NCBI RefSeq assembly: GCF_052425735.1
Contig: NC_135760.1
Coordinates: forward strand, 13,454,001-13,518,000
Reading direction: 5' to 3'
DNA from: Oculina patagonica
Lineage: Eukaryota
DNA: 64,000 nt
The notes under the pieces: model-generated
The model's database searches: none
What the model saw: only the letters and a program-made list of their open reading frames with translations
Told to the model about the DNA's origin: nothing
Position numbers and translations under genes: made by a program
In this document: positions 37,016-48,456 of the stretch, piece after piece
Position numbering within the stretch: position 1 is the first letter of the stretch
Layout: each line of letters starts with the position of its first letter

Positions 37016-40000
37016 ATGGCGGCGTTTTGTACAAAATCCAGGGCTTTTGCCTTGGCTATTCCACGTTGTTCGTGTTGTGGTGGTCATTGGTTATCCAAGA
37101 TGAAATATCGTCTGTTCTCCAACTATGAAACAGAAGAGAGAAGTACGCATTTTGGATACAAGAGAGTATCCGAACAAGAAAAGACCCAGAAAGGTAGACA
37201 TCAGTGCACGGTCAATGTGTTCTGTTTTATACTTTCTCTTTTCATCTTTCTTTTGGCTCCAATTGACTGGCAGCTATGAATTGGCGAACAAACATCCAAC
37301 ATTTAGTTGACAAATATCTGACCAGATAAAATATGCAAAAAACCTTTTGAAACAGCACATGGTGTTTGCCTTGGAAACACCACCACTCCCCCACCCCCTA
37401 CCCCCTACCCCTCCCCTTATGCTTTGGAAATTCTAGTTTAGCCAATCCTTTCTTTAAAAAACTTTGGCTTTTGAAATTGCTCTTCTAGGAATTTCCAGTG
37501 TTGGACATTGACACTAAATATATGCCTTTAGTTAGACTTTTTATAATGGCTCTGGGCAAAACATCCAATAGATTTTCTTGAGACACAACAGGTGACAATC
37601 TTTCACGTTTTTTCAGGTTATCAAAAGAATGCAAATATAAACTTCAATTAATGTTTTTTTTTTGTCATTTCTCCATTAATATATACTGCAATTCTGTTTT
37701 TTCAGTTTACAAGGTGTTTGAAAATGTAGCAAGTTCATACGACAAAATGAATGATGCCATGAGCTTAGGAATACACAGATTGTGGAAAGACAGACTTATC
37801 AGGGTACTAAACCCCCCTGTGGGAACAAAACTGTTGGACGTTGCTGGAGGAACAGGTAATTGGTACGTAAACTATCGACATACTCACCAATAACATCGAG
37901 TGAACTGACAGCCATAACAGGTGTTATAGGACGGATGCAACCCTTCATAAAAGTCCTGTTACTGACATGTAAAAGAAAATTGGTTTCAACTTGTTTATAA
38001 TCATACTTGGCAAAGTGGTTTTTAAATTGGAACCCTAGCACCCAAGCCACTAACTATTTGTTTTGTTGCAGGTGACATTGCATTTAGGTTCCTTAACCAT
38101 GTAAAGAACAGATCACAGAGGAGTAGACGAAGAACAGAAACTGCTGACGCTCATGTAACTGTGTGTGATATCAACAAAGCCATGCTTGATGTCGGACAAC
38201 ACAGGGCTGCAAGATTCAATCACTCTTCAGGTGCACCTACATGGTACTTAAATGTTTTCAACTCACTTGCAGGTTCAAACCCCATAGGATATTTTCAATT
38301 AATGCTTTAAAGATTGAAGGTATTGCTTTGCAACATAATTTTTGCCACCACTGGCTACAACAGAGTCCCAAAATGTTTTGGCTATGGTGCCAACCAAGTT
38401 ACAAGAGGCAGTAAAATGGAGATTAATGCATAAAATATCCTTGGAACAATCTCTCAATTAACACTTAAAGAAACTATCAGGGGTGGATGGACATATCGTA
38501 TTTTCTCAATTAAACGCCCCTGGCGTTTATTTCAAACTTGGCTCTGTGGATCTGGCATTTATTTGAACGGTGCAGTTTATTTGAGCAAAATGTTTATTAA
38601 ACAAGGGTTTTTAATCATTATTTGTGACATGAATGTATCTTGCTATCATACCTTAAGCATATTACACCTCAAATAAATGCCTAAAAGGCTTACTTACCAC
38701 TCTACCTGGGAGACCCGGCATTTATTCGGGGCCCGGTATTTAATCGAGAAAATTAGGTATATAAGAACTATAACCTGTGACACAACTGCAGAACGAAAGA
38801 ACGCTGTTTCTACAAAATTGTTCTGTACAGTCTTGACAGTAATGTAGAAATTACAGTCATTGCAATGAGCTTGAAAAAAAGACTTAGTGTCGCCTTAGAG
38901 GTGTTGCTCATTAGACTGAGTTATTTCTTTACTTGTGGTGCAGGGATATCATGGATTCAAGGGGATGCTGAAGAGCTGCCTATAGCAACTGCGTCATACG
39001 ATGCTTACACAATAGCCTTTGGGATTCGAAATGTGACAAGAATACACAAGGTTACACTTCATGCATGTTTACTCATTTATACCTGACTCTTCCTTTCAGT
39101 GTTTACAATTTAGACATAATTTTAAGGATTTGAAACTTTTAAGAGTGCATTCTTAAACTATCCTGTGTTTAATTCTCAGGCATTGAGTGAGGCATACAGA
39201 GTTCTTGCACCTGGTGGAAGATTCCTGTGTCTGGAATTCAGTGAAGTGAAAAATGAGCTCTTGGCTAGGTATAATTATTACAATAATTTATTAATTAGTT
39301 ATTTATTTGTAATAAATATTTTTATATTTATTGGTTTAAACTTTTAAATTTATTATAAAATACCAACTGCTGAAAAAAATTGCTGGACAGGCACCTCAAC
39401 TTGTTTTACTAGTGGATGCTACTGGGCTTAAAAGCTGCCCTGCTACCAGTGTCAATTCATTGAAAGAGGGAGGGGATCAAGGGAACTCTGCTACAGTGGA
39501 ACCCCGATATAACGATCCTCGATATAACAATATTCCCGATATAACGATGAATATTCTGTGTCCTGTCAAAAGTTACAGTAAAGAGTATGGGACAGAACCC
39601 CGATATAACGATCTTCGATATAACGATATTCCTGATATAACGACCAGAATTTAGTGCACCGAACGTAAAATCTTTCCCGATATAACGATATTATCAGTAC
39701 TCAGTACCAATTTAAGCAAAACATTGAATTTAACACAATAACCTTACAGTAATCGAGTAATCTCTAATGTTTCTGCCAACAGCTTTGTACAATTATATAC
39801 GAAAATGATACTGTGTTCTAAGCCTCTTTATCAACTTTATCCTCTTTATCCTCCTTGTCATTCAATAGTTCTCTAAGTTTCAGTATCTTTGATTAAGTTA
39901 ACCCCGATATAACAATTTTTTTGGTTATTTTACGGCCATATCGTTATATCGGGAGTTTCGATATAACGATACCTCGATATAACGATATAATTTTACTGCT

Positions 40001-41136
40001 CCCTTGACATATCATTATATCGGGGTTCCACTGTAGTAGGGTGCAACAATATTATTGTAATCCACAAATGTGGGTTTCTGGATGTTTATTACTTATATTT
40101 TGTAACTGTTTTCTGACAGTGCTTATGAGAAATACTCCTTTGATGTGATACCTGTTATGGGACAGATCATTGCTGGAGACTGGAAATCTTACCAGTATTT
40201 AGTGGAAAGCATCAGACAATTTCCAAATCAGGTTTGTTTATTTCAGTTTTAATCTACAGTAGAACCCCGGTAACTCGAACTTTGGATGACTCGAACAACC
40301 CCGCTAACTCGAACATACTTCCATTTCCCTTGGATTTGAACTCACTTTTAAGTCATTTTTACTCGGTTACTCGAACTCGGATAACTTGAAAACCCCGCAA
40401 ACTTGAACTAAATTTTGTTTCCCTTGATCAAAATTTGGGTCAAATTAAACCCCGATAACTCGAATTCCGGTTCTTGCAACTCGCCACGGTTGCCCATTGA
40501 TTAGAGCAACAAAACAGATCACCTAATTGACAGCCCTTTTCCACTCTTATCCTAAGAATTTATGATCGTATTAGAGTTTCTGACAAGATAAGTTTAATTT
40601 GCACTGTGCTGTATACTGAGGTGCTGAAAAATCAGTAAGCTATCAGTTATTAACTTGGCAAATTAAATAACATTCAATCTACCCCGATAACTTGAAACCC
40701 CGCTAACTCGAACAGTTTTTCGTTTCCCTTCAGAGTTCGAGTTACCGGGGTTCTACTGTATCTATTGTATTACTGAGTTACCTTTATTTTCTTCTTTCAT
40801 CTTATATTGACAATTTTTGTTTTGTGAAGGGAGTCATTATTTCCAAAAAAAGGTCTTTTACCAAGAATAAGGAAGGGGCCTGGGGCCCTTCCCCTAGAAC
40901 CACCACTGGGTACCCACTGCCTCCTCCCAAATAAAGGAAAGAAGGAAAACAAGAAATGATAACATATGCTGCAGTTATCTAACAAAGTTTGTTGCAGCTG
41001 TCACTGATTTTTGATATTAAATTTTGTTTTTCAGGAAGAATTTGCAGGCATGATAGAAGATGCTGGATTCAGCCATGTGACTTATGAGAACTTAAGCTTT
41101 GGAATAGCAGCCATTCACTCTGGCTTTAAACTATAA
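37016..41136 (+). CDS. COQ5: 2-methoxy-6-polyprenyl-1,4-benzoquinol methylase, mitochondrial (UbiE/COQ5), 298 aa; exons 37016-37193, 37706-37855, 38072-38230, 38944-39050, 39180-39268, 40120-40231, 41035-41136
   Basis: Motifs [71 protein letters not shown] and AAIHSGFKL*. Exons sum to 897 nt. Confidence 0.97.
38496..38758. mobile_element. Degenerate MITE in a COQ5 intron
   Basis: CGTATTTTCTCAATTAAACGCC ... GGTATTTAATCGAGAAAATTAGG imperfect TIRs. Confidence 0.6.
39494..40033. mobile_element. Tc1/pogo-type MITE in a COQ5 intron
   Basis: TA|CAGTGGAACCCCGATATAA ... TTATATCGGGGTTCCACTG|TA, with subterminal CGATATAACGA repeats. Confidence 0.88.
40257..40758. mobile_element. Tc1/pogo-type MITE in a COQ5 intron
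   Basis: TA|CAGTAGAACCCCGGTAACTCGAAC ... GTTCGAGTTACCGGGGTTCTACTG|TA. Confidence 0.88.
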
Positions 41137-46779: not shown

Positions 46780-48456
46780 ATGATGAATCGAAGTAACAAC
46801 AATAGTAGGCGAGTTTACGTGGGAAACTTACCTTCCAATGTAGACGAAAGAGATTTGGAAGATATCTTTTACAAGTACGGAGAAATTGCAGACGTCGACT
46901 TGAAAATTCCTCGGTACGGGACTGGAGGCACACCGTTTGCCTTTGTCGAATTTAATGACCCAAGGTACGAAAGCAACTTGTAGTTGCCTGTTTATTACTG
47001 TATTTAGCTAGTTAGTTTAATGATATTAAAAACTCTCTCAGAACTTTGAAGCCACGTTTTGCCGTTTCGTTTGAGTACGGCGTCGTTTCAGATTTGGTGC
47101 GGTCGGGTTTCAGTTTCGCAGCAGTTTCGACACTTTTACTTTGTCTGACTTGAGCTGTGGCGCAAAAACAAGCTTGTATCTAAGAAAAGTCCTCATTTTC
47201 ATTTTGTAGACTTATTATTTTCTCAGCATTCCTCGCTATAAACCTTAACTTTAACTTTTAACTTGAATTTTTTTTCGCAACTGTGACGTGTACATGCAAC
47301 CTGCTGAAGTGAGGCTTTTTGAACAGAAACGTTTTGAAAATCTTTAGCCACATTTTTTTTGGGGTGATCCAGAATTTAATTTTCTTGTGAGTTTAAATTT
47401 TCTTGTGAAGAAAGTTACCATCATTGTGAAGATTTGCTTTTGGTTTCAAAGCTGTTGACACTCTAGCATAAAAAATTTATAAGTTTTCTATACAACAGTC
47501 AACCAAATATGTAAATTTTTGTGTCAATGAGTTTACTGGAAGCCTTCTATTGATTCAAGAGTTTTTCTTTCTGCTTTCGCCTTTGCTATCATCACCCTCA
47601 CCTGCAATTGTTACTTCAAAAGAGTCCTTGTATTTCTTAATGCTGTATTCTTTGTTTATTTCTCTGCTTGTATTTAATTTTTCTACACCAACTTTGTTTG
47701 AAAAGTAAAATGTTTATTGCTTTACAGAGATGCTGAAGATGCTGTTAGAGGGAGAGATGGCTACGAATTTGATGGTCAGAGAATTCGTGTAGAGTTCCCT
47801 CGTGGGGGACGTGGAGGAGGCCGATCAGGTGGAGGAGGTGGATTCGGTGGTGGCGGTGGTGGTTATGGTGGTGGGGGTGGCGGTGGCGGTGGTGGCCGAG
47901 GTCCACCCCCACGGCGGTCTGAATACCGTGTTTTAGTCTCTGGATTGCCTCCCACTGGTAGCTGGCAAGACCTCAAGGACCACATGCGTGATGCTGGTGA
48001 TGTTCAGTTTACTGATGTTTTCAAGGATGGAACTGGCATTGTGGAGTATTCTCGCCATGATGACATGAAATTTGCCCTGAAACACCTTGATGACTCCAAG
48101 TTTCGCTCTCATGAGGTATACAAATCCAGTCACCCTTTAGAAGTAACATTTGTGGAGGCTAAGTTTCAATTTTTTTTCAGCGTGTGCAAGAAAAAATCTT
48201 ACACTGTGTTGTTCTCCCTTTTATCTTTAAGGGTGAAGTTGCATTCATTCGTGTAAAACGTGATAATCCTGGTGGTGGGCGTGGGTCACAAAGCCGAAGC
48301 CGATCACGTTCAAGAAGCAGATCACCAAGAAAGAGGTCACATTCCCGCTCCCGCAGTCCTCGTCGATCCAAATCCAAGTCCCCATCCAGATCACCAAGGA
48401 GGAAGAGATCAGCCTCTCCAAGGCGTTCCAAATCTCGTTCTCGTTCACGTTCATAG
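46780..48456 (+). CDS. SRSF1: Serine/arginine-rich splicing factor of the SRSF1/SRSF9 (ASF/SF2) subfamily, 265 aa; exons 46780-46964, 47728-48115, 48232-48456
   Basis: RRM1 ([19 protein letters not shown]), Gly linker, pseudo-RRM2 with SWQDLKD, KFRSHEGE, then an RS domain. Confidence 0.95.

Follow-up and report, generated by a model that had tools for sequence, protein, structure and literature searches.

A compact COQ5-DYNLL-SRSF gene block in the coral Oculina patagonica and its counterparts in other animals

Four genes in a compact locus

The stretch analysed here is a 64-kb window of the Oculina patagonica genome (contig C3:13454001-13518000 of a 529-Mb assembly), and our subject is a compact group of four genes at 37016-48456 within it: COQ5 on the plus strand, two tandem DYNLL (LC8) genes, DYNLL-a and DYNLL-b, on the minus strand, and an SR-factor gene of the SRSF1/9 type on the plus strand. 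An earlier note, made from the letters alone, had described a COQ5-DYNLL-SRSF block at this place. Its gene types, coordinates and orientations hold, while the single DYNLL gene it claimed proves to be two tandem genes. The tail-to-tail arrangement that it saw between COQ5 and DYNLL involves DYNLL-a, and the head-to-head arrangement of DYNLL and SRSF1/9 involves DYNLL-b. The note had made its evolutionary argument conditional on a cnidarian genome; consistent with this, the best protein matches of the SRSF gene are from the corals Desmophyllum pertusum (92%) and Acropora cervicornis (84%), which marks the genome as scleractinian. An Rfam scan of the window gave zero matches.

Contigs assembled from sequencing runs were aligned to positions 42400-48399. 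Runs X1, X2 and X8 are RNA-like (spliced, with no depth in the SRSF introns) and X17 is DNA-like; as assembled contigs they reveal splice joints and minimum extents but give neither starts nor levels. The COQ5 exon model, upstream of that region, was built from GT-AG sites and open frames. The features are as follows (UTR, untranslated region; aa, amino acids; nt, nucleotides).

37016-41136, plus strand: COQ5 coding region, predicted, 7 exons, 298 aa
37016-37193, 37706-37855, 38072-38230 and 38944-39050, plus strand: predicted COQ5 exons 1-4, from GT-AG sites and open frame
39180-39268, 40120-40231 and 41035-41136, plus strand: predicted COQ5 exons 5-7, from GT-AG sites and open frame
42450-42719, minus strand: DYNLL-a, single coding exon, 89 aa, stop included; Pfam Dynein_light, E 3.6e-44
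42720-42902, minus strand: DYNLL-a 5' UTR, with a 132-nt intron (42720-42851) and a non-coding first exon from 42852 to about 42902
45314-45583, minus strand: DYNLL-b, single coding exon, 89 aa, stop included; Pfam Dynein_light, E 5.8e-43
45584-46385, minus strand: DYNLL-b 5' UTR intron, 802 nt; joint 45583/46386 with CT..AC ends, in X1 and X8
46386-46438 (minimum), minus strand: DYNLL-b non-coding first exon, from contig depth and joints in X1 and X8
46439-46698, no strand assigned: putative shared divergent promoter interval, bounded by transcript contigs, at most about 260 bp
46699-46964, plus strand: SRSF exon 1, 5' UTR from about 46699, ATG at 46780, start of RRM1; Pfam RRM_1, E 8.8e-13
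47728-48115, plus strand: SRSF exon 2, end of RRM1, glycine-rich hinge and pseudo-RRM with SWQDLKD; Pfam RRM_1
48232-48456, plus strand: SRSF exon 3, end of RRM2 (GEVAFIRVK), Arg/Ser-rich tail and stop

The exon pieces of COQ5 match Pfam Ubie_methyltran with a combined profile coverage of 9-233, and the product carries the S-adenosylmethionine motif LDVAGGTGD. It is the sole full-length Ubie_methyltran gene found in the genome, the other 20-odd genomic matches being to the generic methyltransferase core only (positions ~35-170). By tblastn, the window exons match COQ5 exons of Desmophyllum, the anemone Actinostola sp. and the amphioxus Branchiostoma belcheri, and exons 6 and 7 show 94-100% identity to Desmophyllum COQ5. 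The first 60 residues of the protein are basic with little conservation, in keeping with a putative presequence. The stop codons of COQ5 and DYNLL-a lie 1313 bp apart. Within COQ5, intron 5 (39412-40004) and positions 40681-40712 hold repeated units of 15-16 nt with the consensus CCCCGATATAACGAT, which give open reading frames (ORFs) of the PRYNDPRYN type; these units are probably a repeat element.

Both DYNLL genes match PF01221 over profile positions 1-86 of 86 (E ~1e-43), show 92-94% identity to vertebrate DYNLL1/2, and are the only DYNLL1/2-type genes recovered in a search of the whole 529 Mb. The two are 91.8% identical to each other over the coding sequence, with unalignable flanks, and the DYNLL-a protein is identical to the COQ5-side copy of Desmophyllum. 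Both copies are found in transcript-like contigs, with 0 differences in X1. We considered whether the second copy could be an assembly artefact and rejected this, both copies being present in independent sequencing runs. The DYNLL-a joint 42719/42852 is seen in X1 and X8 with CT..AC ends (GT..AG on the minus strand), and its contig stops at 42902, with adapter letters beyond. DYNLL-b has an AG acceptor immediately before its ATG, and indeed both 5' UTR introns end right before the start codon. DYNLL-a has its own promoter, separate from SRSF.

Several further observations concern the DYNLL copies. A contig of run X2 (organism B), with a depth of 568, covers 45369-46058 and runs unspliced from the DYNLL-b exon 475 nt into the intron of X1 and X8, which could reflect an alternative start, intron retention or a strain difference. 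We compared the copies of the window (42450-42719 and 45314-45583), Desmophyllum (L017 2174-2440 and 3840-4106) and Actinostola (L021 7804-8070 and 9205-9480). Synonymous divergence (dS) between copies within a species is 0.40 in the window and 0.26 in Desmophyllum, at or below the 0.47-0.48 between positional orthologues, and the N-terminal residues still pair DYNLL-a with Desmo_1 and DYNLL-b with Desmo_2. As judged from these comparisons, the pair looks like an old duplication followed by partial gene conversion. The short pieces 44242-44279 and 44837-44924, between the two genes, are high-copy interspersed repeats, with a depth exceeding 5000 in the DNA-like run X17 and numerous divergent continuations.

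SRSF is coded from 46780 to 48456, and its introns (46965-47727 and 48116-48231) are confirmed by spliced contigs from three runs (X1, X2 and X8), at joints 46962/47726 and 48113/48230 (GT..AG, cut +2). The spliced product of 265 aa comprises RRM1, the glycine hinge, the SWQDLKD pseudo-RRM and an RS tail, with two Pfam RRM_1 matches. In a solved-structure search with exon 2 as the query (end of RRM1, hinge and RRM2), full-length human SRSF1 was the best match (162 bits, E 6.8e-47). Against isolated RRM2 chains, namely SRSF1 chains and 1wg4, which we take to be mouse SRSF9, RRM2 scored ~101-108 bits, compared with 66 bits against SRSF6. The other two-RRM SR gene in the genome, the C1 paralogue, gave the reverse pattern with SRSF6 best. 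Together with named database matches that are SRSF1 throughout, these scores agree with the SRSF1/9 label given by the earlier note and point to a gene closer to SRSF1/9 than to SRSF4/5/6. Genome-wide it is the sole SRSF1-type gene, the next SR gene, on C1, being 42% identical. Its glycine hinge is encoded by imperfect GGT/GGC repeats (47811-47902), and run X8 carries an in-frame 6-nt insertion, GGTGGC, after 47875, suggesting that hinge length varies among strains or species.

The interval between DYNLL-b and SRSF

SRSF contigs begin at 46699-46729, with adapter letters preceding 46699 in X2, and DYNLL-b exon 1 reaches at least 46438, so the starts on opposite strands are at most about 260 bp apart. 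This is below the 1 kb used to define bidirectional pairs. Bidirectional initiation had been proposed for ~46400-46780, and it is supported by the position of the opposite-strand first exons of the RNA-like contigs, which lie inside that region at this short distance. The segment 46386-46779, spanning DYNLL-b exon 1, the interval and the SRSF 5' UTR, shares 79% identity with Desmophyllum, compared with 68-72% for neighbouring introns and spacers. A block conserved with Desmophyllum within the interval contains ATTGG (an inverted CCAAT box) at -256/-252 from the SRSF ATG, and five of the eight species under comparison have ATTGG somewhere from -200 to -275. Also conserved with Desmophyllum is GCCATCTT at -79/-77 from the SRSF ATG, just downstream of the interval in the SRSF 5' UTR; it is found at -90 in Priapulus and at -365 in B. 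belcheri. We consider that 46439-46698 most likely acts as one bidirectional housekeeping promoter.

Neighbourhoods in other animals

For a survey of the same neighbourhood elsewhere, we took the contigs on which exact orthologous proteins are encoded, with 10 kb of flanking sequence to either side, and searched them by tblastn with the window exons. Acropora, Hydra, Nematostella, Trichoplax and ctenophores are outside the survey, and no exact protein match was returned for DYNLL-b or for the SRSF1 of Acropora cervicornis. The loci recovered read as follows.

Desmophyllum pertusum (L017): COQ5(+), DYNLL(-), DYNLL(-), SRSF(+), SRSF(+)
Actinostola sp., anemone (L021): COQ5(+), DYNLL(-), DYNLL(+, intact, 91 aa), SRSF(+)
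Branchiostoma belcheri (L022): COQ5(+) 3387-7115, DYNLL(-) 7692-7958, SRSF(+) from 10001, SRSF(+) from 23922
Branchiostoma lanceolatum (L016): SRSF(+), SRSF(+), GatC(-), TRIAP1/UPF0203(+)
Glandiceps talaboti, hemichordate (L020): DYNLL(-), DYNLL exon(-), SRSF(+), GatC(-), TRIAP1(+)
Priapulus caudatus (L023): DYNLL(-), SRSF(+), GatC(-)
Mizuhopecten yessoensis, scallop (L019): partial DYNLL(+) at the locus edge (2-187), DYNLL(-), SRSF(+)
Acanthaster planci, starfish (L018): SRSF(-), DYNLL(+)
Halichondria panicea-associated contigs (L007 and L024): DENR/SUI1(-), TRIAP1(-), DYNLL(+), two conserved unknown ORFs(+), SRSF(+)

The order and orientation COQ5(+)-DYNLL(-)-SRSF(+) is shared by the window, Desmophyllum, Actinostola and B. 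belcheri. The earlier note had suggested a microsynteny older than the cnidarian-bilaterian split, and this recurrence in anthozoans and an amphioxus supports it; judged from gene order, the block would be no younger than the last common ancestor of cnidarians and bilaterians. The adjacency of DYNLL and SRSF, which the note expected in other cnidarians and in bilaterians, was found in Scleractinia, Actiniaria, Mollusca, Echinodermata, Hemichordata, Priapulida and Cephalochordata, that is, in other anthozoans (Desmophyllum and Actinostola) as well as in amphioxus, scallop, starfish, hemichordate and priapulid. The pair is divergent in the window, Desmophyllum, B. belcheri, Mizuhopecten, Acanthaster, Glandiceps and Priapulus, and in every species the two coding starts are ~0.8-2.1 kb apart. 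The stop-to-stop spacer between COQ5 and DYNLL is likewise short, at 1274 bp in Desmophyllum, ~575 bp in amphioxus and ~0.6-1.7 kb overall. In the teleost Dallia pectoralis, the locus tags of an SRSF1-type gene and a DYNLL gene follow one another on a single contig. Beyond SRSF the neighbourhood continues with GATC and TRIAP1 in B. lanceolatum and Glandiceps, and with GATC in Priapulus. Locally duplicated DYNLL or SRSF genes are seen repeatedly, namely in Desmophyllum, Actinostola, Glandiceps, Mizuhopecten and amphioxus. The coral TRIAP1 is on a separate contig, C6, and a search of the coral's own genome for GatC, COX6A and a DENR exon returned nothing, exon-wise searching being weak for small intron-rich genes.

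The exact DYNLL-a protein is also encoded on contigs of Halichondria panicea holobiont metagenomes, among them L007 from assembly JAHZIO. Collinear with it is L024 (376 kb, labelled 112x), whose SRSF protein is also present in H. panicea assembly JAHZIM and whose long ORF has as its nearest Atlas cluster one marked 'commonest Porifera' (score 0.97). L007 and L024 are likely of sponge origin. If so, a TRIAP1-DYNLL-SRSF linkage in another arrangement predates the cnidarian-bilaterian ancestor. The two ORFs between DYNLL and SRSF (L007 10518-12162, plus strand; L024 5357-6613, plus strand) share 71-75% protein identity between the contigs and match no Pfam family; together they make up an unknown gene that has been inserted between the two.

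The earlier note had given the coral block the same order and orientation as human 12q24.31. The relative orientations of human COQ5, DYNLL1 and SRSF9 match the coral, and human SRSF1 and DYNLL2 are also neighbours, on chromosome 17. The order is borne out by the published human list of MSI1, COX6A1, GATC, TRIAP1, SRSF9, DYNLL1, COQ5, RNF10 and POP5 (PMC11061283), and the divergent orientation of SFRS9 and DYNLL1 by a survey in which the pair, with 102 nt between its members, is a candidate bidirectional promoter (Table S5, row 522; Davila Lopez et al. 2010, PMC2871058). That survey recorded the pair in human, mouse and Xenopus only, with a low conservation rank of 0.0196; the same genes are here followed into cnidarians, a mollusc, an echinoderm, a hemichordate, a priapulid and amphioxus. 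Compared with human 12q24.31, COQ5, DYNLL and SRSF come in a like order, whereas the coral has two DYNLL genes, TRIAP1 on another contig, a GT10 fucosyltransferase gene after SRSF and an ankyrin-repeat gene, not RNF10, facing COQ5.

Ancient microsyntenic pairs are known across metazoans, with HSPE1/HSPD1 as the type example in the main text of Irimia et al. (2012, PMC3514665). Going by that text, the DYNLL-SRSF pair resembles them in joining unrelated neighbours in many phyla, mostly 5' to 5' and with short spacing, for which a shared promoter is the proposed cause; it is unlike them in its convergent third gene, in the presence of GATC and TRIAP1 in deuterostomes and in the loss of orientation in some lineages. 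The pair is not named in that main text, and literature searches, which did not extend to that survey's supplementary lists, turned up no paper discussing it or the three-gene block. The phenomenon of deep microsynteny around a bidirectional promoter is therefore known, and DYNLL-SRSF is a well-supported further case of it.

The surroundings of the coral block include several other genes. On the opposite strand to COQ5 is an ankyrin-repeat gene (36206-36631 and 31543-35299, minus strand), and only ~385 bp separate its first large exon from the COQ5 ATG, which places COQ5 in a second head-to-head pair; human COQ5 faces RNF10 instead. Following SRSF is an intronless GT10 fucosyltransferase gene of 426 aa (51383-52663, minus strand), in the slot that GATC occupies in deuterostomes and the priapulid. 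A PP1 catalytic-subunit gene (10678-14159, plus strand) lies ~28 kb upstream of DYNLL-a, and its exons have 85-100% protein identity to a copy on the probable sponge contig L007 (1905-4608, minus strand), where PP1 is 5 kb from DYNLL. We take human PPP1CC to be on 12q24.11, and PP1 near DYNLL may be a further old linkage. In and after the PP1 gene there are purine-rich, GC-rich islands (13200-14000 and 14800-15200; GC 0.58 and 0.72) with a strong G and A excess on the plus strand, which yield long spurious Arg/Gly/Pro-rich ORFs on both strands.

Inheritance and maintenance of the block

We consider it highly probable that the block was inherited, with a divergent DYNLL/SRSF core that uses a shared promoter, COQ5 held by a short spacer and a tandem DYNLL duplication in stony corals. 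The core would be the divergent pair of DYNLL and the SRSF1/9-type gene, with first exons back-to-back over a short interval, and a break between them would strip promoter elements from one of the two genes, so that the pair would stay together. Selection on the interval, rather than slow neutral decay, would then hold the pair. COQ5 would most likely be kept by its very short convergent spacer, a small target made up mostly of two 3' ends. In stony corals, DYNLL would have been duplicated in tandem, with DYNLL-b retaining the promoter shared with SRSF, and DYNLL-a retaining COQ5 as its neighbour and having its own promoter and short 5' UTR intron.

A number of observations weigh against this interpretation. 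The earlier note had the three-gene block probably held together by a shared SRSF/DYNLL promoter, an inference that is supported, by the proximity of the two starts, for DYNLL and SRSF. The shared promoter cannot account for the COQ5 link, as COQ5 borders DYNLL-a, which is transcribed from a separate promoter, indicating that DYNLL can be independent of the shared interval; in the coral no single DYNLL has both neighbours. In Actinostola the SRSF-side DYNLL copy is on the SRSF strand, giving linkage without a head-to-head arrangement, and in L007 and L024 DYNLL is again on the SRSF strand with another conserved gene between. The 10-kb flanks of the scallop, starfish, hemichordate and priapulid loci showed no COQ5, a result that is uninformative given the flank limit and gaps of 2347 and 7869 N. 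The RNA nature of the runs is itself a guess, and the depth of their assembled contigs is no basis for ranking genes. The ATTGG and GCCATCTT matches were chosen after seeing the alignment and are leads only, and the conservation excess of the promoter block is modest. Of the causes considered for the DYNLL/SRSF pair, a shared promoter has the best support.

Neutral persistence is a live rival for the whole block, if a rather unlikely one. The arrangement would then be ancestral and unselected, lasting through its compactness (<12 kb) and the slow rearrangement of anthozoans, amphioxus and vertebrates. In keeping with this, all species seen have very short spacers, the altered orientations in the anemone and in the sponge-type contigs demonstrate that linkage can do without the head-to-head form, TRIAP1 has moved out of the block to C6 in the coral, and flies and nematodes have, to our knowledge, lost the DYNLL/SRSF pair. 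However, a neutral leftover fits poorly with the retention of the pair in no fewer than six phyla, among which the priapulid, scallop and starfish have different wider surroundings, or with its retention by vertebrates in at least two settings (human SFRS9/DYNLL1 and the teleost SRSF1-type gene with DYNLL). Nor have the recurrent duplications of DYNLL or SRSF split the pair. A shared chromatin domain or housekeeping cluster spanning COQ5, DYNLL, SRSF, GATC and TRIAP1 seems to us improbable. It would explain the conserved block of five genes in deuterostomes, the proximity, to within a few kb, of TRIAP1, DYNLL and SRSF in the probable sponge contigs even though their orientation is reshuffled, and the attachment of COQ5, which is beyond the DYNLL/SRSF promoter; against it are the loss of TRIAP1 from the coral block, the failure to detect GATC and the unrelated functions of the genes.

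That the human likeness arose from independent origin, an assembly artefact or mistaken orthology was raised since DYNLL and SR proteins belong to multi-gene families, and we regard it as having a negligible chance of being correct. We found nothing in its favour: the window holds the genome's only DYNLL1/2-type and SRSF1-type genes, nine other animals with independently assembled genomes show the arrangement again, and the DYNLL copies and SRSF splice forms are seen in independent sequencing runs. Chance or convergence as a source is not credible, because order and orientation recur in two other anthozoans and amphioxus and the pair in four further phyla; independent origin of the block was rejected as contradicted by the survey.

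Going beyond the inherited block and its shared promoter, we offer a bolder proposal on which we would put rather less than even weight. The DYNLL/SRSF interval may be a single cis-regulatory module, over 600 million years in age, that couples LC8 and SR-factor dosage across animals, with an inverted CCAAT box ~200-275 bp upstream of the SRSF ATG and GCCATCTT near the SRSF start as candidate elements. It may anchor an ancestral COQ5-DYNLL-SRSF-GATC-TRIAP1 block, of which TRIAP1-DYNLL-SRSF would trace to sponges.

Few traces of ancestral animal genome organisation and of promoter constraint can still be read, and deep microsynteny of unrelated genes is one of them. The block described here is compact, consists of single- or low-copy housekeeping genes and is traceable from anthozoans to human, possibly to sponges. 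Its natural variants, with tandem or inverted DYNLL, tandem SRSF and the gene inserted in the probable sponge contigs, make it a test case for distinguishing a shared promoter from a small target as the reason that neighbouring genes stay together. Overall, the block provides a local marker of the ancestral linkage group that became human 12q24.

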